From Glycera tridactyla (taxonomy: Eukaryota), in contig OZ286468.1 of the NCBI GenBank assembly GCA_965644265.1, forward strand, positions 27,714,001-27,778,000: 64,000 nucleotides of DNA, in the 5' to 3' direction. Both the position numbers and the translations under genes were made by a program. Of this stretch, positions 38,608 to 64,000 are shown piece by piece. Within the stretch, counting starts at the first letter, position 1; each line of letters begins with the position of its first letter. Below the pieces are notes generated by a model. It had not been told where the DNA came from. It saw only the letters and a program-made list of their open reading frames with translations, and did no database searches.

Positions 38608-39158
38608 TCACTCTTCAAACTTGACACGAATGATGAGACAGTCGTTGACAAGATAGGGAGAATACTGCCTCCTTAGACTGCTGTTCCTTAGGTCTGCGAG
38701 GGCAAGATAACGAGCATATCCAAATACAATATTATAGTCTCTGCGAGGTTTTTGCCAGAGAGCTCCTCTGCATTCACTTGCTTCCAGTGTCATAGATCGA
38801 TGCCGCCCACCTCCTGTCAAGTCGAGTATTTCCAATGTTATATCCTGATTAAAGGGCCAGCGCAAATCTCTATCATGAGGACCTTTATAAATGTTGATGA
38901 AAAGTGATAAGTGCGAGCCCTTCCCCATTTTAAATCCATTTGGAAAGAGCTCAAGCTCCATCTTATATCCTTTTTCATGGCCGAAGAATACTGGGCTGTA
39001 AAACCGTTCATTTGGTTCGGGCACTGCAAGAAGTTTCGACACTTGAGTCACTCTCCAAATATAGATACCACTCCTCAGTGTTAGGTCCTCGGTGAGTGAT
39101 ACTCTCTGCTGCCATCGTGCTCTTGAATCGCATATTCTCCACAGCATGTTGTTCGATT
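38608..39158 (-). CDS. TRAF-like coiled-coil end + MATH/TRAF-C terminal exon, copy 1 (acceptor AG mutated to AA)
   Basis: SGIYIWRV...FYSPVFFGHEKGYKMELELFPNGFKMGKGSHLSLFINIYKGPHDRDLRWPF...YLVNDCLIIRV. Frame intact. The position homologous to the acceptor reads cttgtAA. Confidence 0.85.
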
Positions 39159-41129
39159 TTACAAGAAAGTAGACAGCATAACTGTTATGGTACAAAATCA
39201 GCCATCGCATTATCATTTTCTGTCGATATCTGTGCTCTTATAGAGTATATCCTGTGATCGAATTTTTCTGATTTTTGGGAGAGTACCGAAATATGTTTTT
39301 TTTTTATGTTTAACGGCATGTATCAACCCACAGGACTATGTATGCCATGTGTTCCTGGTCAATGAAAGCTAGATGTTCTCTCCCCTGCAGGCATCAGTCT
39401 CAAAAACCATGAACACAAGATGATGGGGAACCTGAACAGTTATCAAGTGGAAGTAAGTGACAGTTCAGACACACCTTTAACTACACAACTGCCAGAAAGA
39501 CCATTTCTTTTGAAGCAATACGCCTACATTTTGTCAGTTCAATCAGCCTGTGGAGCAGGAAGGGTGAGACACTGCACAGTCTGTTCAATGGGGAAGATTA
39601 GGGTTCATGATTGCATATGATCTTTCACAAATTCTCATGTAGTTATAGTGTACAATATGTGACATCAATGCAGTGGACTAGTTGAACAGTAATCACGGCA
39701 GAAAAAGCTCTCCAAACATTCTGTGTGTGATGGACTAGCTCAGTATGGATAAGAGTCACCAAGCTTCTGAAAGCCCTTGATTGCAGGGTTGTCTCCATCA
39801 AGTTTCATAATAATTGCTATCTATTTCTCACTTGAGTTGGCACCAGGCAAGTCTTAAATGCAATAAGGCCCTTGCATTTGTTATAACCAATCACCTGTAC
39901 CTATTCTACCACATCAATTCCTCTGTACCTTGTGCCCTTGCCAGTTACAGCATTCAAATGAGTATGCCCCAAACAACCACAAGATACCAGGTCCAGAAGA
40001 AGAGTGATGAGAAGTGTTGCACGAGTCTCCTCTTGGTTCCTGAGGATGCCTGTATCTCCTACAGGGACATGGACAGTTTCATATTCGGATGAATCTCAAA
40101 TTCTGTGGGCATCACAGCACTCTTTGGTGTATCATATTCTTCAGAGATTGATAGAGATAATGGTCAAAGATGATGACCCTTATTGTATACAACCAGCATC
40201 CACTCAATTTGCATGATGAATTTCTCTTGGAGGTTGATGATCTTGTTAATAGCTGATGTTTTCTCCATGCTTTGAAACTTTGCCTTTAATCTTTGCCTCA
40301 AGAGCTTGATCAGTAACAGATAGGTGAAGCAAACTTCTGATTTGCCATCAAAAATCACCCAGACTTCAGTGCTCTCCATATGGATGTGTCATCATTCATC
40401 GGGGCAAGATGTATGGAATTAAGTGCCCAACTATTGATTGAACTGTTTTGACATTTGATTCTCTCATTCTCCAAAGTGGTCAACCTCAATTCCATTCAGT
40501 TAGATTTTGATAATTCGCTTCTGGTAGATATCTCATTAGATGTGCTGGTTGGAGAAGATTCACTGGTAGGACAAATGTTTTTTTATAGGTTTCCCATCTC
40601 CTGCCCCCTGGTTTATCACAGTAATGAAATGTATCCTTTCCAGAGTGAGTTTATTCTAATAGGTCAATTTCATCAATAGCAAATCAGATGTGCTCTCCAT
40701 TCTTGATATATCCAGAATCCATCAGACTCTTCAGTACATTGAAACCTTGTGACACATGTTGAGCATCTTCTGGTGGTGGCTTCCAATATGGACTTCCGAG
40801 TTAACAAGGACATGATTCTTGTCCTGCTCTCTTAAATGAATTGTGAGGGGCTATCCTGATGTGAGAGGAGTTGGAACAGTTTGCTTTTTCACCAAAGAGA
40901 TGACATCTACACCAGCTTACACCAACGCAGTCATGCATATATATAACATATATGTGAAAGAAAAAAAAAATATGTATATATACATATATTATATACATAT
41001 ATGTGTGTCTATCATATACATATATGTTGATGGGATGGTCCCATCATAATATCAACTCCTACATTTATCCTATCATGTCTTAGAACCAACAAAAGAGGAT
41101 ACTCCATAATGGGCCGCAGCATTACCACA

Positions 41130-41760
41130 ACCAATCTCAATATCATATAACCAAATAACCACCATATAACCACCAGGCATCATGATATCCACTCCAAGCT
41201 ATTCCAAAAGTGTCATGAATAAAATCAATTTCACCAGGAAGGTCTGTGTATTGGCTCATCAGAAGCCTTAGCATACTTGTAACCAATGTCAATATCATAT
41301 AAACAAATAACCAAAGCATAACCACCATATAACCACTGGATGTCATGATATCCACTTAAAGTTGTTCCAAATGTGTCACGAATGAAATCAACATCATGTA
41401 GTACCCACAATTTCACCAGGAATGTCTATGAGTTGGCTCATCAGGGGCGTTAGCATAATCAACGTTGATATCATATTACCAAATAACCACCATATAACCG
41501 CTGGATGTCATGATATCCGCTTGAAGTTGTTCCAAAAGTGTCACAAATAAAATCTACATCATTTAGTACCCACAATTTCATCAGGAATGTCTATGAATTG
41601 GCTCATTAGAAGCATTAGCATAATATATGTTGATATCATATAACCGACTAACCACCACATAACCACCATATAACCACTGGATGTCATGATAACCACCCCA
41701 GGTCATTCCAAAAGTATCATAGAGTTCATCTACATCATTCAGTACCCAGAATTTCACCAA
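41130..41760. repeat. Degenerate tandem repeat, about 150-175 bp unit, about 4 copies
   Basis: Recurring atatcatataaccaaataaccaccatataaccac...tgtcatgatatccac...aatttcaccagga. Confidence 0.7.
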
Positions 41761-42095
41761 AAGGAAATTGGTTCATTATAAGCAAATATGACTGGTGGAT
41801 TTGTGCCAGAAAGTACCCATGGTTGCAGGAATCAGCCGTAACCCGTATAATGGGGTCAGGAGGTGGGAAAATTTGAACCCCATCGTTTTCTGATTGTTTG
41901 AACTCCAATCAACTAAATAAAACCAAAAAATCAATTTCAGCACAGAAGTCCCACGGGAGCCTTATTTCTGACATACCAGACCGCACTATATCAGGATTAC
42001 ACAGCCTGAGTCTCACGCTCTCGGGCGATCTTACCCTGCTTGGCCCAAATCTTAATAATTGACAAATGCCATCAGTGGTGAGCTTCAATTCTGGA

Positions 42096-42445
42096 TTAAG
42101 CATTAAAGAATTGAACCACCTGCTCAGGAAGGGTCATGTCTCTGATTACGAGCAACCCCTCGAACACAATCACACACAATTGTTTTTTAAGGGTGTCGAT
42201 ATCAATTTTATTATGTTCATTATGTTCATCATGATCTTCAACTGAGGTCAGGTCCTCCAAGTTCGGGTTGCTGGCGATGGGTTGACAAGACGTATTCGAA
42301 CTCCTTAACTGAGCCAGATCACGTTCTGTTCCATCTGCTATTTCCTGGAGCCGTTCTTTCAATGTTTTCTGGCCCCCAGTGACTGACACTCTGCCGTGCC
42401 ACCGTTGTGATGACTCACATGTTCTCCTCAGTCTTGTATCCAACT
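42096..42445 (-). CDS. Chimeric TRAF-exon paralogue: first 25 or so codons TRAF-like, then unrelated sequence
   Basis: Acceptor ctctattgtAG|agttggatacaagactgagg matches copy 3 (ELDTRLRRTCESSQRW..RVS). No MATH domain follows and the frame stays open to 42096. Confidence 0.55.
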
Positions 42446-43199
42446 CTACAATAGAGTAGGAAGCATAATTTTAATTATCTTGTTTATTGCATGGATGAGA
42501 TGGCAATCCGAGAAATCACTATTTTGGCTGTCAGATGTTCGGATGCTTCGCTTAAGAACGATTTACTTCCACTCTGGACAGAAAGATCCACATGGAGACG
42601 ATGGTTTTCCCAGAGGGTATGAAATACAAGCATAACAGTAATATATACAAACCAAATGTGGTAGTGAAGAAGTAGTGACACCACGAAGTGAATAAATAAT
42701 AAGTCATGACCACGATTACGAATACATATGTAGTCGTACACAAGTCGGGGACAAGGGGGGGGGGTGTGCTTGAAGGATGGATGACATCCACCAGTAGGAT
42801 AGTGTTGCCAGGAAACAAATCGTCACAAACATGGAGCCCCAAAACTATCCATGCACTCATGCTTTCGATAATTGTTTGTTTGACATTTAATGGCATGTAT
42901 TAACCAACAGAATTATGTATGCCGTGAGTTCCTGGTCAAAGAAAGTGTGATGTTCTCTCCCCGGCAGGTATCACTTACACAAACCCTGGACACGAGATGA
43001 TGGGGAACCTGGAAGGTTGTCAAGTGGGAGTAGCTGACAGTCAAGACATACCTCTACCTAGTTAACATAAACAAACTGAATCTAATGATAGCATATTTAA
43101 CTATGTAGCTGGCTGGAAGCTGACACTCTCGTTCTCATGCCCCTATATTTCCCTCTTCGTGATCAACCTTCTACACTTCATAATTTATCAGCCATACCT

Positions 43200-43570
43200 C
43201 TCTCTCTCCATCCATCTGTCCATCGATCAATACATCCATCTATCGGTCCATTCATCCGTGCTCTCATGCAAGCACCCATCCATTCATATATCCATGCATG
43301 CATGCATGCATGCATCCCCCCATCCATGCACGTCCCTCCTACATTAATGCCTCAAGAGCCCTGATTTCCTTATGGAATTTCCAAGCATGCATCCACCCAT
43401 TCATGCGTCCATGCATCCACCCATGCATCTCACTCCGTCCACCTTTTTCTCACTCTCATGCGCCGCTATCTCGCCCACTTTCTATTCAAATCCCATGCTG
43501 CACAATTTATCGACCATTTCTCTCCCCCCCCCCCCCAAGCATCCCTCCATTCATGCATGCATCCAGTCAG
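43200..43570. repeat. (CATC/CATG)n low-complexity tract
   Basis: Read directly. Confidence 0.8.
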
Positions 43571-43619
43571 CAAATTTCCATGCTTGATAACTCATCGACT
43601 ATCACTCCCTATACCGGGC

Positions 43620-43930
43620 ACTTTCTGATGATTTTGTTTGGTTTTGTTGGGGGTTTAACGTCACGTCAGCTCCACCTGGGCTATATTGTGACGCCCATGC
43701 AATGGGCATGGGTGGGATCATTCAAGACTCCCCCTTCTGGATCCCCAACAGAAGGTGAAAATTTATGAAATTCACAGACACTCAAGGTGTCATTTCTGTT
43801 ATTAAAAATGTTGACCATGGTCTTACCATATGAACATGAGATTCATTCACATAGCTTCCACTAGGTCGGTTATTTTAGGCCATTGTGTTACGCAGCAAAC
43901 ATGAGATCCGTTCACTGGCCTCCACTTGGC
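43620..43930 (-). repeat. SINE-like family R1 copy (long)
   Basis: Aligns by eye over about 300 bp with 61-350. Confidence 0.7.
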
Positions 43931-44397
43931 CGTCTTGCATCAAGTTTTCCTGTTTGTTTGTTTGTTTGCTTGAGGTTGAACGGCATGTATCAACCCAGGG
44001 TTGTATGCCATGTGTTCCTGGTCAATGAAAACAGGATCTTCTCTCCATATAGAGATTCCACCCCTCACTGTCAAGTACTCAATAACTGATATTCTCTTGT
44101 GCAACTGTACTATTTATATGTGTGTTTTCCTCAGTCGGGTGTTTGCATACTTTCGCGATGTTCTCAAGATGATTGAATTATTGCTTGGTCAGCATGTAAT
44201 GGCATGTATCAAGGGACTATGTTAACTGTGTGTTTCTTATCTACAAACCTGGATGTTCTGTCTCCTGGTTGGCCACATATATAAAATTTTCCCACCAAGC
44301 GATTGGTTCCAATCATCAATTATTTTATCCTCCAAAAAAATACAAAGAAAAACAATGATTATGCAAGTTGCAATGATTTCGTCATTTTGATATAAGA

Positions 44398-44987
44398 TTA
44401 GTCTCCAAGATTGACACGGATAATAAGGCAGTCATCGTCAAGATAAGGAGAGTTCTGCTTCTTCAGGTCTGTATGGGCAAGATGACAAGGACATCCATAT
44501 CCAACATTGCAGGCTGTGATAGGCTTCTGCCATGTAGCTTCTTGACCTTCACCTGCTTCCAGGGTCAAAGAGCTATGCTGCCCACCTCCTGACAAGTCAA
44601 GTATTTCAAGAGTTACTTTCTGCAGAAAAGGCCAGCACAAATCCTTATCATGGGGACCTTTACAAATGATGAAGAAGATCGACAAGTGTGTACCCTTCCC
44701 CTCTCCAAAACCATTTGGACAGAGCTCGAGTTGCAACTTATATCCTTTTCTATGACTGAAGAAGATTGGACTGACAATTCCTTCATCTGCTTTGGTAGCT
44801 GCTAGAAGTTTCGACACTTGAGTTACTCTCCATGTAAAGATGCCACTCCTCAGTGTTAGCTCTTCAATGACTGATACGCTCTTGTGCAACTGTACTCTTG
44901 ATTCACGTGTTTCCCTTTCAATGGCTGATATGTCATTGCGTAGCCGTACTCTAGATTCACATGTTTTCCTCAGCCTGGAGTTCAAAT
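44398..44987 (-). CDS. TRAF-like coiled-coil + MATH terminal exon, copy 2 (intact)
   Basis: Acceptor ctttcttgcAG|at (phase 1). GIFTWRV, SPIFFSHRKGYKL, CPNGFGEGKGTHLSIF, KGPHDKDLCWPF, YLDDDCLIIRV*. Confidence 0.9.
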
Positions 44988-46430
44988 CTGCAAGAAAGTG
45001 ACCAGTATTATTTTGAATGCACAATGTTAGCCATCACATCATGTCCTTTCGGGCATCTCAGGGCATACTGTAGACTTTCATGAAATATAATAGGGCATAA
45101 TCTAATTATTAGATTCGCAAGAAAGATATAGGTGTGGCAATAGGTCCTCTGGATTCCTCAGGTGAACCTGTATCTCCACATACCCCTCAAAATTACTAAC
45201 ACATGTTGGGCTTCCTGTGACTCATGAACTGAGATATCATGCCATCACTCAGGGTGATGAGCCTCACATCTGTTCAGCAATGAAGAATCTAGGTGTGCTA
45301 ACTCACACTAGGAGATACTGACACACAAGCTGAGGGTGCACTAAGGGCAGGACCAGGGCCCACTTGGCAAGGGAACTTCACCTACTTCGACGAACCTCAG
45401 TGTGCATCTTCAATGGACATACAGTAAAGACACACCACACCGCCATGTATCTGTATCTCGTGTGGATTTGCCCGATTGGACCGAGCCCCCTTATGGAGAT
45501 TGAATGTTGATGATCAATTAGCAGGGCATTCAAGATGTACTCAGTGGGTGTGAATGCCCTGCTGAGTGCATGTTCGTCACAGAGAGGGGCAGGTGCTCCC
45601 CCTCCCCTATCAGCCTGTTGGTTGGTTCTCGTTTAACATCACGTCAATTCCATTTCTGCTATAGTGTGACGCCCATGCAAGATAGCATCATTCAAGACTT
45701 CTACCTTTCGATCCCTAACAGAAGGCGAAAATTTATGAAATTCACAGACACTCAAGGTGTCATTCCTATCAGCCTGACCATAAATTTTCATTTATTTTTC
45801 AATTCTCACACCCAGTCCGCTCGGGCATGTTTGGTACCCCCCCCCCCCCCCCCCACACACACACACCATCATTTTCGGATCTGCCACTGCACATGAACAA
45901 CACTGTTATTCATACTCAATGACCTTGATATTCAAGATAACACTCAGACTTTGGGGGTGACCTCCTTTCTGGAACCGCCAAGTGTATATGAACAAAACTA
46001 ATATCTTCCACACTCAATGACCTTGATATTCAAGATAGCAGCCCCACTCCCCAAAAGAAACAGATTATGGCAACTTTGAAAGTTTGAAGGCTATCCATCT
46101 CATATTTGTCGGCATAGGCTCTTGGACACCATTTTCGCCTTTGTGTATATCCGGTACGGCGTATATTGCCGTTCAGATGAAATTGGAAAACTGAGTTGAA
46201 TTGACACAAGAAATTAGTCTTGGAGATCTATCTGACCTAGGCTGGATGTCGCTGTGATGGTACTCCTGTCTGATACAAATCACTGGTTTCCACTTGGAAA
46301 TGTGGGCAATCAGCATGAAAATTGTGTCTTGCACATCTGCACTCCAGGGTGATGACAGATATCAAATCCCAATACAATAGCTTGAGTGATATGGAAGTTG
46401 TTAGCAGTTATAACGCCACAAATGATTTCG

Positions 46431-47456
46431 AACAAGAGCACCGCAAAGCGGGGCATAATACGCCATCGCCACGATTAGTGAGGCAGACTTTTTTCATCTG
46501 GAATGGGATTTGACCTTTATTGCCGTGACTAGTGACACAGACTGTTTTAATTCCAGAAATTGTCTGCAATAGGATTTTATCTTTTTGCACTCGGTGACCG
46601 GGATCAAAGGTTATGACTGCGAAATCAATAAGCATCTTCCTAGACCCAAGGTGAATAGGTATACCAAGTGGCAAATCAATAGCTCTAAAACTTTCTGAGT
46701 TATCGTCCGGAAATGGTCCGGACCATAGATTTGACCTTTTTGCACTCAGCGACCTTGAAAATATAGGTCTCAACCCCACAATCAAAAGGCTCCCTCCCAG
46801 ACCCAAGGTAATCAGGTATACCAAGTGGCAAACCCAATAGCTCTAAAACTTTTTGAGTTATCGTCCGGAAATGGTCCGGACCAGATATTTGACCTTTTTG
46901 CACTCAGCGACCTTGAAAATCAAAGTCGCAACCCCACAATTGAAAGGCTTCCTCCCAGACCCAAGGTGATTAGGTATACCAAGTGGCAAATCAATAGCTC
47001 TGAAACTTTTTGAGTTATCTTCCGGAAATGGTCCGGACCAGAGATTTGACCTTTTTGCACTCAGCGACCTTGAAAATCAAGGTCGCAACCCCACAATCAA
47101 AAGGCTTCCTCCCAGACCCAAGGTGATTAGGTATATCAAGTGGCAAATCAATAGCTCTGAAACTTTTTGAGTTATCGTCCGGAAATGGTCCGGACCAGAG
47201 ATTTGACATTTTTGCACTCAGCGACCTTGAAAATCAAGGTCGCAACCCCACAATCGAAAGGCTTCCTCCCAGACCCAAGGTGATTAGGTATACCAAGTGG
47301 CAAATCAATAGCTCTAAAACTTTTTGAGTTATCGTCCGGAAATGGTCCTCCGGACGGACAGACGGACAGACGGACAGACGGACAGACGCACAGACGGACA
47401 GACGCACAGACGGACGGACAGCGCCATAACATAATACGCCCGATGGCTTATAAAAA
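46431..47456 (+). mobile_element. Helentron-like non-autonomous element (HINE-type) with a 157-bp tandem array
   Basis: Starts AACAAGAG. Units at 46733, 46891, 47048 and 47205, then a (GACG/GACA)n microsatellite, and ends ataatacgcccgatggcttataaaaa. Confidence 0.6.
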
Positions 47457-47534
47457 GGGAAGGATTTGATTTATGAAAATAACAAGCTGTCAGCTAAAAA
47501 ACAGCTTTACAATAGAGGATAACAGCATCAATGT

Positions 47535-47690
47535 TGGTTGGTTGGTTCTGGTTTAACGTCACGTCAGCACCATCTGGGCCATAATGTGACGCCCATGCAA
47601 TGGGCAAGGGTGGGATCTTCCAAGACTCCTCCTTCTGGGTCCCAAACGGAAGGTGAAAATTCATGAAATCCACAGAACCTCAAGGTGACG
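47535..47690 (-). repeat. SINE-like family R1 copy
   Basis: Same signature with a (TTGG)n head on the plus strand. Confidence 0.65.
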
Positions 47691-49729
47691 AATACCCTCC
47701 AGGCTATTTCATTTTCACTGACGAAAAATAGCATTTGCTTTGAGATGGCTTCCACTTCCTGTTTCTATCATCTACGTGATACCCATATAAAGGTCATTTG
47801 CCTAAAAAGGTCAACTTGGGCTGTGCCTGCGGATGGATTTTCCACTGAAAATGACGTCTCCGAAGATTGACTCACCAAGGAATCTCTATCATGGCTGATA
47901 TATTTTCAGTATCATGCCCTAAAACAAATATCCACCAATATGGAAGGCTATGCTCATCTCCCCAACCGAACAATGTCATCAGCAATGATATATCAATGGA
48001 ATATTGTCCTTTCAAAATCAATTCTTGAGAAAAGTTACTCCTTGCCAAGGAATGACTGTTAAAAGTGTCAGTCGATGACTCTGTATCATTTATTCATCAT
48101 TGGTTTTCTTATAATAGAAAAAAAACATGTTCCAGATTTTGATCAGACTTTTGTACCAGTCATCAAACAGATGGAATGGAACTTATTTCCACTAGTATAA
48201 AATGGATTCATTCCAATGAGTAGACAGCTTCAATAGACACAGCATCAGATTTAGTGAATACTCCACCAAAGTGTTCAATTACAAATTGCCAACTTAAAAC
48301 CAGCTTTACAATCATGGCTTACCCTATGCTCGCAGTACAATGCCATCACACATCCTAGTAACCTAGTAGCAGCCCTAGTGACCCAGAACTGGTACCCGTT
48401 TTTTGTATAGTGACAATATCTGCTACAGGCAAACCATCAGCTACCTACACTTGATATCATTTCTGAGAAGAATTAAGAAAAATCTTAGAGAGATAGGAAA
48501 GGTGTAAGAAAAAAAAATATGGTGTAATTTTTGTAGAATATGCCTAAAGACAGATGACAGAAAATCTCAAGGTATGTTTTCATTCAACCCCCATACCAAA
48601 AACTATTGAGAAGAAGGGAAGGGATGATGCTACATCTAGACCACATCCGTCCCAATGGCAACACTTCAAAGAAAATGACCCTCGCCGATTGGTGGCTGCC
48701 ATCTATAGAGATCCTGGACTCCCACCCTACCAATGGGCCATAATACAATATGAGGCCCACAAACAATCTGAAGCTGTGTGTAAGCTAACCAGAATCATGA
48801 TGACCAACAGATGAGCAATACAATGTATCACAGAAAGCACCATGAATTGACAATCTTTCTTGCCCACTTCATCATGAATACACAAGACAATCAGTTTGTG
48901 GCACAATCTTTTAATCAGATTGCTCAAATCATTTTACATACATGTGGTGTTTGGCCCACTGTAATCGATGAAATACACCGAATGTTTGTCCTTACCATAA
49001 ACACACAGTTTAGATACAGCTCTGTTTGTTGACTTTGGGTACAACAGTAATGTTGCTTATAATGGAGAAGATGAAGAACTGAAAATACTGTTCTGTCAAA
49101 GCACCCCCACACAGTCTTCCATTTTTCCCCCATAAATATTGCATATACCATACATTGCCAAATACGTGCGCAGTACGCCAACACATAGTCGAGCAGATTT
49201 GATCAACCATCATGAGCCCAATGACATGAGCTGATCAACCATGGAGATAAAAGGACGTGCTACTCTATTCATCATGAAGCAGTGAACTGCCAAAGAGGCT
49301 AGTGCTATTCTTGAATGGACACAAAAGTAGAGTCAAAATTGCTTTTTGAGATGTCAGCCTTCTCCAACTTTGAGGTATGTTTTCATGGTCATCAAACATT
49401 CATGGATCGAACACTGTATATCACTGAAAACATGAAAATAGCCAGGCTCCGCATACATCATTGACCTACACTAGATGATTGAATTATTTATGATGGCATG
49501 TATCAACCACAAAAATGATGTAAGCAGGGTTGCATCCAGGATTTCCTGAACTGGGGGCATGTGCCCCATAAAATTTGAGAACAAGGCCACAGAGGGGCAA
49601 TATACCCCGCACACGGGAGCATAGTGGGTAACCCATATCGCACACTGGAGCACAGTGGGTAACCCATATCGGAAAAGGTCATTGAGATGTTTGGTTGGCT
49701 ATTTAATAAGTCACTGGATCACTGTGTAG

Positions 49730-51329
49730 AATAAGAAAATCTAATACATATGTAGTAGCACCTAAAACATTCACCTTGACCTATGACTTAGGGTCACATG
49801 CATTGTAAGGGAGATGTTGTAACATTGCTTGATCACCCCAGATCAGTTTGATCTTCATCCAACAATGCTAGCCTGAGTTATTGTGTGGGATGCGGAAATT
49901 TAAAAATAGCTCCTATGGCCTTGACCTCTGACGCAGGGTCACATGCATCAAATGGGAGATATCTCACCATTGGGTCGTTACGTTGTGAAACTTCGGTGCA
50001 TATCGATCAATGCAAGCTTGAGCTGGAGTGTGAAATGAGAAAATTTATGAACAGTTCCTGTGACCTTGACCTTTGACCTAGGATCAAATGCATCGTGAAG
50101 GAGGTGGCCTACCATTAGGTCATTACTTTGTGTAAGAATGGTGCATATCCATCGGAGCTCTCTTGAGTTAGAGTGCAAATGGGAGAATATATAAATAGCT
50201 CCTGTGACCTTGACCTTTGACCTGGGGTCACATGCATCGAAAGGGAGGTGGCCTGCCATAGGTCATTACTTTGTGAAAGTTTGGTGCATATCCATCAAAG
50301 CTCGCTTGAGTTAGAGAGTAAAATGGGGAAATCTATAAATAGCTCCTGTGACCTTGACCTTTGACCTGGGGTCACATGCATCGAAAGGGAGGTAGCCTAC
50401 CATGAGGTCATTACTTTGTGTAAGTTTGGTGCATATCCATCAAAGCTCGCTTGAGTTAGAGTGTAAAATGGGAACAACTATAAATAGCTCCTGTGACCTT
50501 GACCTTTGACCTGGGGTCACATGCATCGAAAGGGAGGTGGCCTACCATCAGGTCATTACTTTGTGTGAGTTTGGTGCATATCCATCGAAGCTCGCTTGAG
50601 TTAGAGTGTAAAATAAGAAAATTTATGAATAGCTCCTGTGACCTTGACCTTTGACCTGGGGGTCACATGCATCGTGAAGGAGGTGGCCTACCATTAGGTC
50701 ATTACTTTGTGTAAGTTTGGTGCATATCCATCAAAGCTCGCTTGAGTTAGAGTGTAAAATGGGGAAATCTATAAATAGCTCCTGTGACCTTGACCTTCGA
50801 CCTGGGGGCACATGCATCGAAAGGGAGGTGGCCTACCATCAGGTCATTACTTTGTGTAAGTTTGGTGCATATCCATTGAAGCTCGCTTGAGTTAGAGTGT
50901 AAAATGGGAAAATCTATAAATAGCTCCTGTGACCTTGACCTTTGACCTAGGGTCACACGCATCGAAAGGGAGGTGGCCCAACATTGGGTCATTACTTTGT
51001 GTAAGTTTGGTGCATATCCATTTAGGTTAACTTGAGTTAGAGTGTAAAATACGAAAATCTATAAATAGCTCCTGTGACCTTGACCTTTGACCTTTGGGTA
51101 CGAAAATCAAATTCTCGAATATGATTTTTTCATAGATCACAGTTATGAAGTTTTATGAAAATTGGACCAGCCAATTCAAAGTTATTGCATGAAATGTGAG
51201 CGGACGGACGGACGGACGGACGTACATACGTACGTACGTACGTACGTACGTACGTACGTACGTACGTACGTACGGACGCCGGAGGTGAAACTATAATACA
51301 CCGCTTTTTTCAAAAGCGGGGTATAAAAA
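49730..51329 (+). mobile_element. HINE-type element with an about 145-bp tandem array (about 9 copies)
   Basis: Units at 50193, 50337, 50482, 50627, 50773, 50918 and 51063. (GACG)n(TACG)n microsatellite. Terminal hairpin ccgctttttcaaaagcgg followed by gtataaaaa. Confidence 0.65.
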
Positions 51330-51564
51330 GGGGCATTTCTCCACAAAATCTGGCAAAATTGGTGCATTCAATATGGAGTGAGTGCAGCCCTCTTGCTGAT
51401 TCAGGGGGCATTGTGGCCATTAATTGCATTGAAAAAGGGGCCTACATTCAACAAAGTGTATGAAATGCCCTAGTGCTCCACTCGGGATGCAACCCTGTGT
51501 GAGATGTGTTCCTTATCAACGACATCTGAATATTCTGTCTCCTGGTTGGCTACATAGTGCCGGC

Positions 51565-51742
51565 CGTGTATTTAGGAGCCTATTCCTTTACGCACGTTAA
51601 AGATCCACTGCTGTCTTTCGCAAAGAGTAGGGACGGCCCCCGGCAGGCAGTGACTCTTTTCTTCAGCATTTTCAGGTTTTTCAGTCCGATATAACCCAAG
51701 CGGGTTTAAGTGACATTAAACTCAAACAAACAAACAAACAAA
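51565..51742 (+). repeat. SINE-like family R3 copy
   Basis: Matches 5623-5794 including the (AAAC)n tail. Confidence 0.7.
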
Positions 51743-51867
51743 CTCCCAAAAAATGACTATTCTCAATCACCAATTCAATACACTGAAAGACCAGTTTCAA
51801 CAATTTCATCATTCTGGTGTCCGTACGAGCATATTTTGCGAAACTCACTCATCATATCTCCTACAGA

Positions 51868-52400
51868 TCACCCTTTAAGGTTGACACGGATAAAAAGACA
51901 GTCATTTTTGAGATATGGAGAGAGTGGATTTTTTAGGTCTGTATGAGGTAGATAACAATCTTGTCCATATCCAACACTGCACTTTGTGATAGGCTTTTGC
52001 CATATATCTTCACACTCACTCGCTCTCAGTTCCACAGATTTATGATGCTGACCTTCCACCAAATCAAGTGTTTCAAGTTTTACATTGTGACGAAAAAGCC
52101 AGCGCAAATTTCCATTATACTGACCTTTACAGATTATAAAGTAGAGTGACAAGTGAGTGCCCTTCCCTTCTTGATTTCCATTTGGATAGAGCTGGAGCTC
52201 CATCTTGTATCCTTTAATATGACTGAAGAAGGCTGGACTGAAAATTTTTCCATCAGGTTTGGTAGCTGCCAGTAGTTTTGACACTTGAGTTACTCGCCAT
52301 ATAAAGATGCCACTCCTCAGTGTTAGGTCCTCAATGAGTGATACTCTCTGCTGCCACTGTGGTGATAACTCACAGGTTTTCTTCAGTCTTGTGTCCAACT
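51868..52400 (-). CDS. TRAF-like MATH terminal exon, copy 3 (intact)
   Basis: Acceptor ctttcttgtAG|ag (phase 1). FSPAFFSHIKGYKMELQLYPNGNQEGKGTHLSLY, YLKNDCLFIRV*. Confidence 0.9.
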
Positions 52401-52719
52401 CTACAAGAAAGTAGACAGCATGATAGTGATCATTCAAAACTAGCATCAATGAGGTGAAAATCGAATAAATCACATTTTTGGCAGTATATTTCCAATATCA
52501 GCTCTAATGGCTGAGTATGATACCCAAGTCACATTTATTTGCCTGGTTGGTGTTTAATTGCTGTATAAATCAAGATGATTATGTATGCCATGTGAAACTT
52601 CAGATGGCATTCCTAACTAAAGTACTGTCTGGAAACCAATGATTCTGGAAAAGCGAAGGATATAAAAGAAAATGCATTAATCCATAAAAATGGCAAGCTG
52701 TCACAACCCGTGGGTTATG

Positions 52720-53478
52720 TTTGCCGTGTGTTCCTGGTTAATGAAAGCTAGATGTTCTCTCCCCTGCAGGAATCACTCTCACAAACCCTGAACACAAGTT
52801 GATGGATAACCTGAAAGGTTGTCAAGTGGAAGTAGCTGACAGTTCAGACAAAGCTCTACCTAATCTGAACACACATAATAAACCTTTGATGGCATATCTA
52901 ACTATGTAGCAGGCTGGAAGCTAACACCCCAGCCTGATAGCAATGCTTTTTTTTCCGGTAAAGCGCAGTACTTGACACAAGGAAAAGCGATAGGTTTGGG
53001 GAATACTCAACCAAAGTGTTCAATTACAAACTGCCAACTTCAAACGAGCTTTACAATCATGGCTTGCCCTATGCTCACAGTACAATGCCATCACACTTCC
53101 TAGTAACCTAGTCGCAGCCCTAGTAACCCAGAACTGGTGTGCCTGGTACCCGCTTTTTGCATAGTGACAATATCTGCAACAGGCAAACCGTTAGCTACCT
53201 ACACGGGAGACCATTTCGCTGAAGAAATAAGAAGGAAAGAAAAGAGGTGAAGAGAACCATGGTGATAGTGTAATTTTGGTAGAAATTGCCTAGAGACAGA
53301 TGACAGAAAATCTGAAGGTAAGTTTTCATTCAACCCCCCACACCAAGAAATATTGAGAAAAAGAGAAGGGATGATGCTACATCTAGGCCACATCATCCCC
53401 GATGGCAACACTTCAAAGAAAAAGACCCGCACCCATTGGTGGCTGCCTTCTATAGAGACCCTGGACTCCCACCCTACC
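52720..53478 (-). mobile_element. R2 copy (tail missing)
   Basis: Aligns with R2 and ends ggactcccaccctaccc. Confidence 0.7.
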
Positions 53479-54934
53479 CACTCATTTGCAGTGAGGTGAC
53501 TTTTACTTCCTGTTTCTATCACTACCATAGAAATCTGTTTGACCATGGGATATAACCCCACATGCTTTTCTGCTGTCAATATGATAATATCTGACCTGCT
53601 CAAGAGAACACATACCTACAAAGGCCACCTTTCAACAAAGGTGAACTTGAGCGGGAGGATTTTCAAAAGTGAATGACCTCATCAGGGTCACTTCTTGTTC
53701 CAACCATGGGTGGTCTTTGTAGACAGGTTCAACTGTGTACAGTGAAACCTGTTTTGGGAGACCCCTCTTTTGGGAGATCACCCTCTAATGGGAGACTGCT
53801 CTTTATCTGCAATCTCTATTTGACATTCTCAAATATACATCTAATGAGAGACCACCTGTCTTGAGAGACCAATTTTTGTTGGCATTTTGGGCGGTCTCCC
53901 AAGACAGTATTTACTGTATTCAGATTAAAGTCATCCTCATAATCATATATGTCTATTGAGGTGCAGAAATTCCATTGTTCACTTCATATGATTCAGCAAC
54001 TGCCAATTCAAAATAAGCTATTATATAACTAGAATTTTAGTGAGGCACCTCCTCACTCAATATGTCTCCCCCAGACTTTGTAATTATTCACTACCCGCAT
54101 ACATGCCTGGGTCCACCTGCTTGCTTGTTCATCTTCAAGTGAGCATGCGCATTGAAAAGCTAGACATTATTGGTTGACAACTGTCCTTTGAGTGACCAAT
54201 GATGTAGTATACCTAGTCATGAGTATGAAAATGTGTCCTGGGGTATGAGGTGTACTGGGGTACGGGGGGGGGGGGGTCTCTTTGTGTAGGATTTGTCCTC
54301 GAGAATATGCCTAGGCATCAAAGAAGTTCAGTTGAATTTGGGTCAGGGGTTTAAGTGGAATCTTGCTGACAAGGGAAGCTCTTGATCAGGTCTTGCTCAG
54401 TGACCCAGGAAACTAGAACAATTCACCAAGTGAGATTTGTCCATATTCTAAAATTCTGAAAATAGCTCCTGTGACCTTGACCTTTGACCTTTTGGCACCA
54501 TACCAGTGTATCACCACTAGCCTGTAGATGCACACTGAGATGGCAACCCCAAAATCTTGCCATAGCCTGGGAATGTCTGTACACCCAAGTTTGTCAAAGC
54601 CACCCCTGTAATTTATGAAGTGATTGTCCAGAAACTCTTTTGACCTTTTTTCCATTAAGTGACCTTGAAATTGAAGATGGCCACTGAAAATCCGATGGGT
54701 GTATTGCCATATTCTATGAGAGGCTGTACACCAAGTTTGAGAAGGCTACCCCCGAAACTCATGAAGTTATTGTCCGGAAACCATTTTGCACTCAGTGACC
54801 TTGAAATTCGAGATGTAAATCCATAGTCTAGGAAAGGGGGGGGGGGGGGGGGGGTAGCCATAACTCTCAAATTGCTAACAGCAATTGGATACCAATATCA
54901 CAAGTATGGTAGCCATGGGGTATTCACACATAGC

Positions 54935-55083
54935 NNNNNNNNNNNNNNNNNNNNNNNNNNNNNNNNNNNNNNNNNNNNNNNNNNNNNNNNNNNNNNNNNN
55001 NNNNNNNNNNNNNNNNNNNNNNNNNNNNNNNNNNNNNNNNNNNNNNNNNNNNNNNNNNNNNNNNNNNNNNNNNNNNNNNNNNN
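54935..55083. other. Assembly gap (N run)
   Basis: 149 N, next to satellite-bearing elements. Confidence 0.99.
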
Positions 55084-55242: not shown

Positions 55243-56472
55243 AACTAGAACTGTAATCCAGAGGATATACTAATGCCCCCCCCCCGCCATCTTATTCAAG
55301 GTCATATCTCCAAGGTCACAGGGACAGAATGACATGCTCATGTACACCTACCGCTCTTGGGTAATCCACATACCAAAAATGGAAGCTCTCGCATCAATAG
55401 CTTGGATACAATGAGTGACACAAGATTTCATGGCAATTTCCAAGGTCAAGGTCATTGGCCCGAGGTCAAAGTTCATAGGGGCAAAATAACATGCCCATGT
55501 ACACCTACCCCTAATGGGTAACTGACATACCAAAAATGGAAACTCTCCCATCAATAGCATGGACACACCAGGTGCCGCAGAATTCCATAACAATTTCCAA
55601 GGTCAAGGTCACTGGCCCGAGGTCAAAGGTTGTAGGGCCAAATTCACATGCCCATGCACACCTACCCCTCTTGGGTAATCCACATAAGAAAAATGGAAGC
55701 TCTCGCATCAATAGCTTGGACACAATGAGTGCCACAAGATTTCATGACAATTTCCAAGGTCAAGGTCACTGGCCCAAGGTCAAAGGTCGTAGGGGCGACA
55801 TAACATGCCCATGCACACCTACCCCTCATGGGTAATTCACACAGCAAAAATGGAAACTCTCACATCAATAGCTTGGACACACTAGGTGCCACAAGATTTC
55901 ATGACAATTTCCAAGGTCAAGGTCACTGGCCCAAGGTCAAAGGTCGTAGGGGCGACATAACATGCCCATGCACATCTACCCCTTATGGGTAATTCACATA
56001 GCAAAAATGGAAACTCTCGCATCAATAGCTTGGACACACTAGGTGCCACAAGATTTCATGACCATCTCCAAGGTCAAGGTCATTGGCCCAAGGTCAAAGG
56101 TCGTAGGGGCAACATAACATGCCCATGCACACCTACCCCTCATGGGTAATTCACATAGGAAAAATGGAAACTCTCGCATCAATAGCTTGCACACACTAGG
56201 TGCCACAAGATTTCATGACAATTTCCAAGGTCAAGGTCACTGGCCCAAGGTCAAAAGTCGTAGGGGCAACATAACATGCCCATGCACATCTACCCCTCAT
56301 GGGTAATCCAAATACCAAAAATGGAAACTCTCGCATCAATAGCTTGGACACACCAGGTGCCACAAAAAATTGTTAACAGACGGACGGACGGACAGACAGA
56401 CAGACGGACAGACAGACAGACGGACAGAGTGAATCCAGTATGCCCCCCCTACCTTCGGTTTGGGGGCATAAT
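55243..56472 (+). mobile_element. HINE-type element with a 157-bp tandem array (about 7 copies)
   Basis: Starts AACTAGAA. Units at 55441, 55598, 55755, 55912, 56069 and 56226. (GACG/GACA)n, then hairpin atgcccccc...ggggggcat+aa. Confidence 0.65.
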
Positions 56473-57539
56473 TAAGGTTGGTACCTCTCTGGTGAAATTT
56501 TGGTGAAATTTAGGCCTCTGGTGATCTTGAAAATTATGTCACATGGACCAAAATCTAATCAGTTCATTGGACTATCCAAAGGGATATGCCCTCCAAATTT
56601 CGCCCAATTCGGATGAGTAGTTTTGCTGCAATCATGCTCACAAGGTTTTGTGACAGACAGACGGACGGACGGACAGACGGACAGACGGACAATACGAATT
56701 CTATATGTCTCCCACATCAGGGGGGAGACATAATTCGCTGATTTAGTGAGAAATCATTATCATGGCTAAAGTATCTTCAGCCTTGTGTCTCAAAACAAAA
56801 CGAAAATCAACCAGTATGGAAGGCTATGCTTATCTCCTCACGCAAACAATTTTACCTAACCAATTGAATATTGTCCCGTCAAACACTTCTCAGGAAGTCG
56901 CATCACTCACTCACAATTCATTCTTCAGGAATAAGATCACACTGTTGGCTTGTTCGGAATGAGGTCCGCAATGTGCTTCAATGACAGACATGCCGATTGA
57001 CTGCTTGTTGTTGGTTGGTCGTACATTCTGTGAGCACCATCTAGGGTATATACTGAGATTTCCTTGCAGTAGGCATAGGTGAGATCATTCAAGACTCATC
57101 CTCGCGGGTGTTTCAAAGGTGAGAATATATCAAATTCACAGATACCCAACCAGTTAGCCGAGATCTGGCAGTTCTAAAATTCATATTTTCTGACTGAGTG
57201 GTGCGCCCCTGGGGCAAAATAATAAGTATCATGGGCCATTATGCAAAATGATAGGCCATCTCCTATTTAGCAATATGGACTGAAATGCTGCACCAGCCGT
57301 GCAAAAAGGCAAACATGAATGCCAAGGGCCCTGGGCCCAACAACAACCTGCTAATCAGAATCAGGATGATGGACAGCTTGACAAAACAATGCTTTTTGCT
57401 GCACTTTAATGATTCTGAAACATTAGCTTCCTTGGTCAATGGAAATTATCTTATCTAATGCATCATAAACAAGGCATAAATGCACAAAAGGCTCGCATGC
57501 ACGCCGCTTGTCAAAAGGGGACACATCAGCCTCCACCCA

Positions 57540-58200
57540 CACCCCAAAACCAACCAGGCCTATTGGGAGACCCCATCTATGGCTGGCATTCATCAGGGAA
57601 TGCTATGAATTGCATCCACGCCAAGTTTGGTGTGGCTATGAACAGCCACCATCTTTAGAAGAACCCATTTCTGAAAAACCAGTTTTCACCCCAAAACCGA
57701 CCAGGCCTTCTGAGAGACCCAATCTATGGCTGGCATTCACTAGGAAATGCTATGATTTGATCCATGCCAAGTTTGGTGTGGCTATGAACAGCCACCATCT
57801 TTAGAAGAACCCATTTCTGAAAAATCAATTTGCACCCCAAAACCGACCAGACCTTCTGGGAGACCCCATCTATGGCTGGCATTCACTAGGGAATGCTATG
57901 ATTTGCACCCACGCCAAGTTTGGTGTGGCTATGAACAGCCACCATCTTTAGAAAAATCCATTTCTGGAAAACCAATTTTCACCCAAAAAACCAACCAGGC
58001 CTTTTGGGAGACCCCATCTATGCCTGGCATTCATTAGGGAATGCTATGAATTGCATCCACGCCAAGTTTGGTATGGCTATGAACAGCCACCATCTTTAGG
58101 AAAATCCATTTCTGGAAAACCAATTTTCACCCCAAAACCAACCAGGCCTTTTGGGAGACCCCATCTATGGCTGGCATTCATCAGGAAATGCAATAAACTG
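57540..58200 (+). repeat. Tandem array, about 147-bp unit, about 4.7 copies
   Basis: caccccaaaacc-like unit starts near 57540, 57687, 57833, 57979 and 58127. Confidence 0.8.
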
Positions 58201-58429
58201 CATACTTGTTGAGTTTGGTGTGTCCCGATACCAAAAAATCACTGAAATTGTCAGTCCAGTCATTCAAAAAAGTGAGGTTTTATCCCAAATCTACGATACA
58301 TCACACGACTGGCATGCATACTGCTGTGGTGATGGTTGGATGCCCCCCCCCCCCAGAATACACTGGAGCATGTGTACATCAAATCTGGTGGAGGTAGGGG
58401 CTATGGTTGGAGAGTGACCTGACCTGAAG

Positions 58430-59379: not shown

Positions 59380-59380
<1 letters not shown>

Positions 59381-59430
<50 letters not shown>
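59381..59430. repeat. (CA)n microsatellite
   Basis: Read directly. Confidence 0.95.
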
Positions 59431-59433
<3 letters not shown>

Positions 59434-59559
59434 CCACTCACCCCCCCCCCCCCACAAACACAAATACATACACACATTTGAGGAGATGATTGGAGTGCAA
59501 ACTTGTGTTTGACCTTGGAGTTGATGAAATAGACTACATGCCATTATCAATGACTCCAG

Positions 59560-60093: not shown

Positions 60094-60292
60094 CACTGAA
60101 TGACCATAATCATTTCTTCTACTCCATCTTGAATACATGGAACAATAAGCAGCTTGCGGCAAAATCGATCAATCAAATTTATCAAAATATTTCACATACA
60201 TGTGGTGTTTGGCACACTGACCTCAGAGATATACCAATATTCATTTTTCATGTGACAACAATAATTCCAGTCTAAATACAGCCCACCGATTG

Positions 60293-61075
60293 TGTTTGTT
60301 TGTTTGAGGTTTAACGGCATGTATCAACCCAAAGGATTATGTATGCCATGTGTTCCTGGTCAATGAAACCCGGATGTTCTCCCGTGCAGACATCACTCTC
60401 ACAAACCCTAATCACAAGATGATGGGGAACTTGAAAGGTTGTCAAGTGGAAGTAGCTAAGAGTTCAGACACACTCCTTCCTTCTCTTCATGAACAAAGTG
60501 AATCTAATGATGGAATGTCTAACTATGTAACTGGCTGGAAGCTAACACTCAAGCCTGATAGCAATGCTTTTTTTTTGCAAAGCGCAGCACTTGACACGGA
60601 AAAGCATTAGATTCGGAGAATACTCAACCAATGTGTTCGATTACGAACTGTCAACTTCAAGCCAGCTTTACAATCATGGTATGCCCTATGCTCGCAGTAC
60701 AATGCCATCACACAACCTAGTAACCTAGTTGCAGCCCTAGTAACCCAGAACTGGTGTGTCTGGTACCCACGTTTTGCATAGTGACAATATCTGCTACAGG
60801 CAAACCGTCAGCCACCTACACCTGAGACCATTTCACTGAAGAGATAAGAAAGAGCTTAGAGGGATAGGAAAGAGGTTAAGAAAAAGAAATCTAGTGATAG
60901 TGCAATTTTGGTAGAAAATACCTAAAGATAGTTCATAGAGAATTTTGAAGGTATGTTTTCATTCAACCCCTCGCTCCAAAAGATATTGAGAAGAAGAGAA
61001 GGGATGATGCTACACATAGGCAACATCATCCCCAATGGCAACACTTCAAAGTAAAAGTCCCACGCCTCGCAAGAT
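60293..61075 (-). mobile_element. R2 copy
   Basis: (TTTG)n head on plus and the R2 body. Confidence 0.7.
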
Positions 61076-61368
61076 TGTTCCTCCCAAAAACATTGAATAT
61101 ATAAACAAACTTTCATGAGGCCAGAAAAAGAAATCTAGTGATAGTGCAATTTTGGTAGAAAATACCTAAAGATAGTTCATAGAGAATTTTGAAGGTATGT
61201 TTTCATTCAACCCCTCGCTCCAAAAGATATTGAGAAGAAGAGAAGGGATGATGCTACACATAGGCAACATCATCCCCAATGGCAACACTTCAAAGTAAAA
61301 GTCCCACGCCTCGCAAGATTGTTCCTCCCAAAAACATTGAATATATAAACAAACTTTCATGAGGCCAG
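60879..61368 (+). repeat. Perfect-looking 244-bp tandem duplication
   Basis: 60879-61122 is repeated from 61123 with an AG microhomology. Confidence 0.85.
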
Positions 61369-61806
61369 GTAACCCCAACTTCACCGATAAAACAATGGCA
61401 ATCTGAATCAGGAATGTTTCATAGAATCCAGTTTCAATCAACATGCCAGAGATACAATTCTGTGCCTGCGGCTAGTTCTTGGCACCATAATTGCTTTTGA
61501 AGATGTCAGCCTTCTGTTCAGTCAGGATATGCATAAATGTCCAGCTTTGACATGTTCTAATGTTGACCATCCAATCATGGACTGGACACTTCTATATTAC
61601 TGGGAGCTTGAAAATAGCCTGTGCAGATGTGAATTAGCTTTTTCGACATTTTCCTTGAATCATTGGTTGGTTAGATTTTGATATCATGTATCAGCCATGT
61701 ATAATTCCAATACGTGACTAGGTCCAATCGTCAAGTACCTGATCCCTCAATACAATAAATGGAAAGACCATGATTTGCAAAACTCATATAATGTATCTGA
61801 TTCAGA

Positions 61807-62849
61807 TCACTCTACGAGATTTGCACGGATGATAAGACAATCATTGTCAAGAAAGAGAGTGCTGCTTTTTCAGGGCAGTATGGGCGGGATAACAACCACG
61901 TCCATATCCAACATTGCACTCTGTGATAGGCTTTTGCCATGAATCTCCTCCACCTTCACCTGCTTCTATTCTAATGGATTGATGCAGCCCAGCTCCTGTC
62001 AAGTCGAGTGTTTCAAGTATTACATTCTGATGAAAAGGCAAGCACAAATCATCATCATGTGGACCATTACAAATTTTGAAGAAAAGTGACATGTGAGTGC
62101 CCTTCCCCTCTTCATGTCCATTTGGATAGAGACTGAGCTTCAACTTATGTCCTTTCTTGTGGCTGAAGAAGTATGGACTGGCAATGTCTTCATCCGATTT
62201 TGTAGCTGCGAGAAGTTTTGACACCTGAGTTTTGTTTGTTTGTTTGTTTGTTTGAGGCCTAACGGCATGTATCAACCCACAGGATTATGTATGCTGTGTG
62301 TTCCTGGTTAATGAAAGCTAGATGGTCTCTCCCCTGAAGACATCACTCTCACAAACCCTGAACACAAGATGATGGGGAACTCCCTGAAAGGTTGTCAAGT
62401 GGAAGTAGCTGATGGTTCAGACACACCCCTACCAACTCTAACTCTACAAAAAAGACATATTGAACCTGATGATATCTAACTATGTAACTGGCTGGAAGCT
62501 TACACTCAAGCCTGATAGCTATGCTTTTTTTTTACGCAAAGCGCAGTACTTGAAACAAGGAAAAGCATTAGGTTCGGAGAATACTCAAACAATGTCTCCA
62601 ATTACGAACTGTCAACTTCAAACCAGCTTTACAATCATGGCTTGCCCTATGCTTGCAGTACAATGCCATCACACAACCTAGTAAACCTAGTCGCAGCCCT
62701 AGTAACCCAGAACTGGTGTGCCTGGTACCCGCGTTTTGGATACACTTGAGTTACTCTCCATATAAAGATGCCACTCTTCAGTGTCAGGTCCTCGATGAGT
62801 GATGCTCTACGTTGCCAGTGTGCTGTTGTCTCACACTTCCTCTTCAATT
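61807..62849 (-). pseudogene. TRAF-like MATH terminal exon, copy 4 (disrupted)
   Basis: Acceptor ctttcttttAG at 62850. A 511-bp R2 insertion after WRVTQV and a 2-bp deletion near the end (tctctttcttgac vs tctccttatcttgac). Confidence 0.85.
62231..62741 (-). mobile_element. 5'-truncated R2 insertion inside a TRAF exon, 10-bp TSD
   Basis: Flanked by acacctgagt (62221-62230) and acacttgagt (62742-62751), which duplicate the TQV codons of the exon. Confidence 0.8.
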
Positions 62850-63593
62850 CTAAAAGAAAGAAGACAGCATAATTGTGATGGTTCAAATCAGCTATCATCA
62901 TCTCATTGATGGTGGCATCAGGGATATGAAATATGAGAAATAACATTTTGGGTGTAACTTGTGCGTTCATGACTCAAACAGCATGTATCAACCACAAGGA
63001 TTACGTGAGATGTGTGTTCCTTACCTACGAAAACTGGATGTCCACTATCCTGTTGGCGACATATATGATTTGCTCCCCAAGTGACTTCCAATCATCAAGT
63101 ACTCAACCCTTTAACCTTCAACCCTCTTGAGATGCTACTATTTCTTTGATGGGAGAGATGATTCCCATGAGAGATACATTACACCGGTGATCAGTTTGTT
63201 GGAGAATCACCCAATGGCAGCGCATCAGCGATGCCGTGATTATGTCATTCTTTCTACCCCAAACCTTACAGAATTTCATCATTTTTCAAAATTCCAGGAC
63301 ATTTCCAGGACATTCCTGCAAATTTCATTTTTCCATAACTTTTCCAGTCCTGGAATTTGGTTTGGCAATTTTCCATAACTTTTCCAGGATTCCAGGACGC
63401 GTGCAAACCCTGAATTGTATTAACCATGTATAATTTCAACAATTGGCTGATGCCAATCTTCAAGTACCTGATTCTTAAATTCGATGAATGAAGAGACCAT
63501 GAATGCGCAGGTTTCGCAGGTTTCAACAATTACATCATTCGGGTGACCATACTAGCACATTTTTCAAAACTAACTCAATATTCCTGATGCAGA

Positions 63594-64000
63594 TCACTCC
63601 TCGAGATTGAAACGAATGATAAGACAGTCATTGTGAAGATAACGAGAGTTCTGCTTCTTCAGGTCTGTATGGGCAAGGTAATGATCACGTCCATATCCAA
63701 TATTGCAGTCTTTGACAGGCTTTTGCCAAAATGTGTCCCCACCTACACCTGGTTCTATTCTGATAGATCTATGCTGCCCACCTCCTGTTAAGTCAAGTGC
63801 TTCAAGTATTACATTCTGATGAAAAGGCCAGCGCAAATCCTCATCATGTGGACCTTTACAAATTTTGAAGTAGAGTGACATGCATTTAAATTCCGCCAGG
63901 GAAAGTGCATTTGGACAGAGCTTGAGCTTCATCTTATATCCTTTTTCATGGCTGAAGAAGAAAGGACTGAAGATGTCATCAGCTGGCTTGGCAGCTGCTA
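63594..64000 (-). CDS. TRAF-like MATH terminal exon, copy 5 (continues beyond the window)
   Basis: DIFSPFFFSHEKGYKMKLKLCPN...SLYFKICKGPHDEDLRWPF...YLHNDCLIIRF*. Confidence 0.85.
   Translation of the reverse strand, partial: AAAKPADDIFSPFFFSHEKGYKMKLKLCPNALSLAEFKCMSLYFKICKGPHDEDLRWPFHQNVILEALDLTGGGQHRSIRIEPGVGGDTFWQKPVKDCNIGYGRDHYLAHTDLKKQNSRYLHNDCLIIRFNLEE

Follow-up and report, generated by a model that had tools for sequence, protein, structure and literature searches.

The minus strand of a 64,000-nucleotide stretch of the Glycera tridactyla genome (contig OZ286468.1, positions 27,714,001 to 27,778,000; hereafter the window, numbered from its first base) carries a row of paralogous exons of the TRAF-C/MATH type, and the locus raises the question of what such a row is: the last exons of separate genes, exchangeable ends of one gene, or remnants of past duplications. 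An earlier inspection of the letters alone, here called the sequence-only reading, had proposed exchangeable ends spliced to a single upstream module, with debris of partial duplications as the alternative. The present analysis identifies a real head-to-tail cluster of fast-evolving TRAF-type MATH exons in which intact and dead copies are mixed. Its leading, still tentative, explanation, given a probability of about 0.45, is a tandem cluster evolving by birth and death, in which a fast-evolving TRAF-like family would be represented by small genes and pseudogenes.

A head-to-tail cluster of TRAF-type MATH exons

A tblastn search of the 64-kb window with three of the exons confined the MATH-homologous pieces to 38.6–64 kb, all on the minus strand and arranged head to tail, and found no MATH exon copies in positions 1–38000. 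The cluster contains five near-full-length TRAF-C/MATH exons (A, C, D, E, and F) and two fragments (B and a second fragment):

38608–39158, minus strand: copy A, TRAF-C/MATH exon with an open frame that ends in the homologous stop
42378–42445, minus strand: fragment B, intact acceptor (tag/AG) and about 30 homologous pre-MATH codons
44042–44143, minus strand: second fragment, some 34 codons from the pre-MATH part and the first strand
44398–44987, minus strand: copy C, intact exon, acceptor cag/AT
51868–52400, minus strand: copy D, intact exon, acceptor tag/AG, best MATH_2 score of the copies (108 bits)
61808–62849, minus strand: copy E, pseudo-exon with its halves at 62743–62849 and 61847–62230
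63594–64000, minus strand: copy F, visible 134 codons open to the homologous stop, 5' part cut by the window edge

The sequence-only reading had counted six paralogous minus-strand exons; tblastn bears out their paralogy, strand and places, but not their number or equivalence.

All five near-full-length copies belong by sequence to the TRAF-C/MATH domain, matching both Pfam MATH_2 (PF22486) and TRAF-mep_MATH (PF21355) with E-values of 1e-14 to 1e-31. The closest solved structures in a phmmer search against PDB are the TRAF domains of TRAF2, 5, 1, 4, and 3, at about 30–33% identity (6e-27 for TRAF2). An AlphaFold (AF2) model of copy D has a mean predicted local distance difference test (pLDDT) score of 75, with values of 75–91 across most of the domain and dips to 64–68 in two stretches, and the top 44 matches of a Foldseek search with this model against PDB are TRAF domains of TRAF1–5 (E 1e-13 to 1e-10). 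The model thus predicts the TRAF-C beta-sandwich fold for copy D. The Pfam matches, the PDB matches and the comparison of the D model with TRAF domains all agree with the TRAF/MATH identity assigned earlier.

With the TRAF-C (MATH) domains of TRAF1/2/3/5 and TRAF4 the copies share, besides the sequence match, a predicted eight-stranded sandwich and a short helical stretch within the same exon. This stretch, of about 25 residues preceding the MATH domain, is modelled in D at pLDDT below 50. In contrast to the TRAF family, the copies are accompanied by no RING or TRAF zinc fingers in the 64 kb. The region aligned to the serine triad of the TRAF2 peptide groove consists of variable acidic and glycine-rich residues in the copies.

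Pairwise identity among the copies is 53–65% for protein and 70–78% for DNA. Their Pfam scores are 82–108 bits, versus 123–155 bits for canonical TRAFs, and those of A, C, and D are on par with the scores of their closest relatives. The nearest proteins, with 44–53% identity, are encoded on 0.7–1.6 kb contigs of one metagenome; a search of representative proteins returned none above 53% identity at any length. In a feature search, the clusters nearest to D have MATH-only proteins of 172–194 amino acids as representatives. A multi-MATH match (P0002) was discarded as context, being an intronless 9-kb open reading frame (ORF) of an unrelated organism.

C and D are intact and spliceable, F is open over its visible part, and the remaining pieces E, B, and the second fragment are dead, while A combines an open frame with a broken acceptor. 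Copy A carries a 15-nt in-frame insertion, an in-frame ATG at exon codon 4 and more in-frame ATGs 18–20 codons upstream, while copy C has a 54-nt in-frame internal tandem duplication in its pre-MATH part. In D the family motif GPHDDDLxWPF is altered to GQYNGNLRWLF, and in F a 27-nt patch of equal length stands in place of the conserved GxGKGTH loop. Copy E is interrupted by a 512-bp, 5'-truncated insertion resembling a short interspersed nuclear element (SINE; 62231–62742) with a 9-bp target-site duplication, ACTCA(A/G)GTG; in addition, a 2-bp deletion near 61855 leads to a premature stop at 61847, the homologous stop being at 61808. Fragment B passes into unrelated sequence within an ORF reaching 42096 and matches no Pfam family. 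The second fragment stops at the same codon where E carries its SINE and adjoins a SINE piece (43951–44046), and C and F have homologous flanks; a pair resembling F and E, in which the insertion was present by then, was therefore re-duplicated and then mostly deleted.

Exon boundaries, reading frames and selection

The exons begin with two bases that are needed to finish a codon, which defines a phase-1 acceptor. A polypyrimidine tract followed by AG in this phase precedes B, C, D, and E, whereas the homologous position in A reads AA (39160–39159); the acceptor of F lies beyond the window edge. The phase-1 acceptor that the sequence-only reading ascribed to all five visible 5' ends thus holds for four of them. 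The same polypyrimidine-AG motif is found at the same place and in the same phase before the MATH exon of the closest relatives, on short contigs of another organism from one metagenome, and two of these contigs (L001 and L003) have in-frame stops just upstream of it. Because its position and phase are kept in the relatives, with these stops in front of it, the acceptor is real and ancestral. On L003 (221–290), the public gene call P0032 reads TGA as tryptophan, and its first 19 residues are intron sequence; the real exon begins at a tag/AG acceptor, as in the window. Outside the exons, about 40–85 nt before the acceptor and about 60–180 nt of 3' flank are still alignable between copies.

The whole exon of copy C has no Met codon, with an in-frame TGA 14 codons upstream of its acceptor, and the first in-exon Met of copy D falls inside the MATH domain. 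As no usable start codon is available to either copy, an upstream coding exon whose last base opens a new codon is required for both. At the other end, A, C, D, and F terminate at the homologous stop and E terminates early, so that the earlier statement that every exon ends in its own stop is accurate for these four and needs correction for E. Two further arrangements were considered and rejected: a spliced-leader or operon organization, as the acceptors of C, D, and E have no start codon close by, and serial splicing into a multi-MATH protein, as every copy ends in a stop (premature in E) and no usable donor is seen before the stops.

The ratio of non-synonymous to synonymous substitution rates (omega), proposed by the sequence-only reading as a way to judge the copies, was estimated by maximum likelihood under a codon model. 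It is 0.642 (kappa 2.44) and significantly below 1, as fixing omega at 1 costs 5.3 log-likelihood units (2dlnL = 10.6, p about 0.001). The tree of the copies is star-like, with terminal branches of 0.33–0.59 substitutions per codon. Random substitutions, in the number given by the terminal branch, were placed on each copy and the probability of a stop-free frame was scored; under such neutrality it is 0.02–0.18 per copy, and jointly 1.4e-6 for the five copies or about 1e-5 without E. The three indels in the intact copies are all multiples of three. The omega below 1, the improbable open frames and the in-frame indels together indicate that the copies were translated for most of their history. 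The copies are, or were, translated, with weak purifying selection keeping their frames open, and an origin as debris only fails for A, C, D, and F, being contradicted by the omega and the joint open-frame probability. The constraint is weak: the DNA identity of the exons is no higher than that of the alignable non-coding spacer blocks (70–77%).

Spacers and the search for upstream exons

A tblastn search with 151 TRAF/MATH proteins found no RING, TRAF zinc finger or other TRAF parts in the 64-kb window, and a comparison of 19 full-length TRAFs with the peptides of all six frames (phmmer --max) retrieved only the MATH exons, with nothing better than E 0.25 elsewhere. This agrees with the earlier observation that the spacers hold no RING or TRAF zinc-finger exon. 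Within the window, then, no such module was found in the same gene as the MATH exons; it could lie right of 64000 or in an assembly gap. All minus-strand ORFs of at least 45 amino acids outside repeats were read without finding an upstream exon, and an Rfam scan gave nothing at threshold. The 744 bp between F and E were considered as the seat of a very small first exon for E; this was rejected, as the best donor candidate makes TAA when joined to E. The interval 42446–44397, described earlier as almost all repeat, turned out to be recognisable repeat over only about a quarter to a third of its length.

The spacers do contain a few short paralogous blocks, as well as the gap:

49334–49443, minus strand: block X of the D-to-C spacer, paralogous to 61486–61619 of the E-to-D spacer
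48852–48961, minus strand: block Y of the D-to-C spacer, paralogous to 60108–60219 of the E-to-D spacer
47878–48016, minus strand: block W of the D-to-C spacer, paralogous to 56749–56883 of the E-to-D spacer
47732–47775, minus strand: block V of C, 2.7 kb from the C acceptor, ending in ATG
53483–53525, minus strand: block V of D, 1.1 kb from the D acceptor, ending in ATG
54935–55083, no strand: assembly gap in the E-to-D spacer, touching no MATH exon or conserved block

Blocks X, Y, and W, which in the D-to-C spacer lie within 47878–49443, are 70–90% identical to their counterparts, and inspection of their frames found none open in both copies. The order X, Y, W, V is identical in the two spacers, and this collinearity indicates that the duplicated unit was the exon plus several kilobases, not the bare exon. 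An ORF crossing the gap is an artefact of Ns, the E-to-D distance is provisional, and a short exon could hide in the gap.

Block V, of 38–44 bp and 84% identity between its two copies, contains an ETS-like CAGGAAGT motif and has ATG at its 3' end. It occurs twice in the window, only upstream of C and D, the two intact copies with competent acceptors. In the block of C, four codons and a single base separate the ATG from GTGAAA, which could act as a phase-1 donor. In the block of D, a SINE (52704–53481) begins immediately behind ATG-A; a phase-1 donor would be supplied by GTGGGT, with which this element opens. Speculatively, block V may be a tiny candidate first exon. The dead pieces E and the second fragment sit 255–744 bp behind another exon, and they and B are without block V.

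Downstream of the stops, 60–180 nt are about 80% identical among A, D, and F (38541–38607, 51801–51867, and 63416–63593). Their consensus, ...GAGTGAGTTTTGCAA..TGCTAGTATGG..AATGA.GAAATTG..., may represent an element of the 3' untranslated region or slow decay.

The public sequencing runs that match 44300–52600 comprise one poly(A) metatranscriptome, four runs whose kind is uncertain and some that are very small. Over 44300–50299, runs X1 and X2 behave as low-coverage DNA, with unique sequence at 2–5x, repeat depths in the thousands and exon C running collinearly into its flank; X5 and X6 contain repeats only, and the poly(A) metatranscriptome contains repeats but not exon C. In X2, extra contigs cover the 5' part of exon C (44700–44990) with variant bases at 44821 (A>G) and 44824 (T>C). 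They are deeper than the unique flanks, which hints at additional close paralogs or alleles of C at other places in the genome.

The SINE-like family is about 800 bp long, with the 5' end GTGGGTAGGGTGGGAGTCC and the 3' end ...GTTGATACATGCCGTTAAACCTC followed by (AAAC)n, and its copies are 5'-truncated to differing extents. About nine copies or pieces lie in the window: those at 36094–36902, 37474–38300, 48241–48731, 52704–53481, 60293–61368, and 62231–62742, and smaller ones. Inside one of them a 244-bp unit is present twice at 100% identity (60879–61368), as a result of a very recent duplication or an assembly artefact. The spacers also hold four mutually unrelated tandem arrays with periods of 145–157 bp (46623–47348, 49857–51093, 55332–56365, and 57540–58203), the first two of which, falling in the stretch that was compared with the runs, have very high depth in the DNA-like runs and occur in contigs of the poly(A) metatranscriptome as well.

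Small genes, relics or exchangeable last exons

In the leading explanation, the repeated unit would be one large terminal exon, comprising the pre-MATH helix of about 25 residues, the whole TRAF-C/MATH domain and the stop, together with several kilobases of spacer. Each surviving copy would belong to a separate small gene as its last and nearly sole coding exon, and the ATG plus one base of the following codon (phase 1) would come from a short 5' exon within the spacer upstream. Such a gene would encode a MATH-only protein of about 180 residues. By analogy with the family, the MATH groove of such a protein, free of RING and zinc fingers, may bind short peptide motifs in receptor tails or adaptors, and paralogs differing in binding could act as non-catalytic adaptors or decoys of TRAF signalling.

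Tandem arrays of MATH genes evolving by birth and death are known from the nematode math/bath genes and from plant expansions of MATH and MATH-BTB genes. The present locus resembles them in its head-to-tail paralogs, rapid protein divergence, high omega and intact copies beside dead ones. It differs in that the copies are of the TRAF-C subtype, not SPOP/MATH-BTB, and have no BTB domain, and in that their own promoters and first exons are only candidates.

Several observations weigh against separate small genes. Comparison of the spacers with each other by tblastx and masked blastn (word size 7) revealed no paralogous coding exon, only repeats and the few short blocks. Block V is only 44 bp long, is conserved no better than parts of the neutral-looking blocks and is not present in the contigs of the relatives, and the would-be donor of its D copy belongs to the inserted SINE. 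No AATAAA or ATTAAA is found on the minus strand within 900 nt after the stop of any copy, the nearest being 1.1–6.2 kb away. Strands and loops are equally variable across copies, which, with an omega of 0.64, shows weak constraint. The sample in which intact copies are compared with dead ones is tiny, and over 44300–50299 no splice junction, transcript start or transcript end is readable in the DNA-like or repeat-only runs. A diversification of the binding surface was also considered and is unsupported, variability being equal in strands and loops.

The best placed of the rivals, although itself rather doubtful, holds that the 3' end of a TRAF-like gene was duplicated again and again and that the row consists mostly of what these duplications left behind. 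Not more than one copy would be in use today, and that one may lie outside the window; the function of A, C, D, and F would have lapsed recently. The weak constraint and the lesions borne by several copies keep this account under consideration: omega is high, exons are about as identical as non-coding blocks, substitutions fall evenly on strands and loops, and to the dead E, B, and second fragment are added the lost acceptor of A, the altered motif of D (GPHDDD/WPF) and the replaced loop of F. The lack of poly(A) hexamers and the presence of repeats, without exon C, in the poly(A) metatranscriptome point the same way, but absence from the contigs of one metatranscriptome does not show silence. 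Opposed to it are the frames kept open over 134–195 codons in four copies, at a joint neutral probability of about 1e-5, an omega significantly below 1, indels of the intact copies that are all in frame, and Pfam scores of A, C, and D that match those of their closest relatives.

It is unlikely that the exons are the alternative ends of a single gene, an arrangement that the sequence-only reading had proposed. A 5' module right of 64000, possibly with RING, zinc fingers and a coiled coil, would then splice from a phase-1 donor to any one of the MATH exons. This arrangement is kept in play by the dependence of C and D on an upstream coding exon, for which the small first exon is only a candidate, and by the strong phase-1 acceptors that both retain. 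The copies, all on one strand, head to tail and with frames held open by selection, are separated by no RING, TRAF zinc-finger or paralogous coding exon; the exon holds merely some 25 helical residues before the MATH domain, so that more coiled coil would be expected upstream; and E, only 744 bp behind F, has little space for a promoter of its own. The 5' module itself is unseen, the window ending inside copy F, and each last exon would need its own cleavage site, at odds with the missing hexamers. The acceptor of A is lost, and three of the seven pieces are dead.

Clusters of alternative 3' terminal exons are known from lola, mod(mdg4), and fruitless of Drosophila, and the arrangement just described would match them in having a common 5' module followed by paralogous terminal exons in a row, every one with its acceptor and its stop. 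In contrast to these genes, several exons of the present row are broken, and the common module, the junctions and the poly(A) sites of each exon are hypothetical. Paralogous clusters of alternative 3' exons are rare compared with tandem gene families, and a literature search gave no case of alternative last exons in a TRAF. Separate small genes are preferred over exchangeable ends because tandem families are the commoner of the two, because the duplicated unit took in kilobases of spacer, because the sole candidate start block precedes exactly the two intact, spliceable copies, and because it is the dead pieces that sit a short way behind another exon.

Very improbable is an account in which the copies are unspliced single-exon genes starting at in-frame ATGs 16–20 codons upstream, the acceptor-like motif being coding sequence (YAVYFLVE): in A, D, and E such ATGs do occur, at positions that roughly correspond, and no stop intervenes before the exon, and the AG-to-AA change of A would be harmless, but C combines an in-frame TGA with the lack of any Met, a stop is present in B too, the polypyrimidine-AG is kept in L001 and L003 with in-frame stops just upstream, and three of five 16-codon extensions being open is the chance expectation.

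Two other coding features of the window lie outside the cluster. A tyrosine-recombinase retroelement with long open ORFs occupies 14803–20183 on the plus strand and encodes, in this order, a GDSL/SGNH-like hydrolase, a 618-amino-acid ORF without Pfam family, a reverse transcriptase and a phage-integrase-type recombinase. On the minus strand, 25749–27776 contains a 675-amino-acid open frame with about ten Ser/Thr-rich repeats of about 40 residues, followed by a Lys/Glu-rich coiled-coil tail, with no significant Pfam family.

Were the exons the exchangeable ends of one gene, this would be the first known case of a TRAF adaptor that varies its receptor-binding domain through exon choice, placing exchangeable heads in a signalling family of innate immunity, and, outside the insect BTB genes, a second and rare kind of paralogous alternative-3'-exon cluster. 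If, as seems more probable, they belong to separate small genes, the locus would represent one more lineage-specific expansion of TRAF-like MATH genes, unsurprising in itself and useful for annotation and for the understanding of innate-immune gene turnover.

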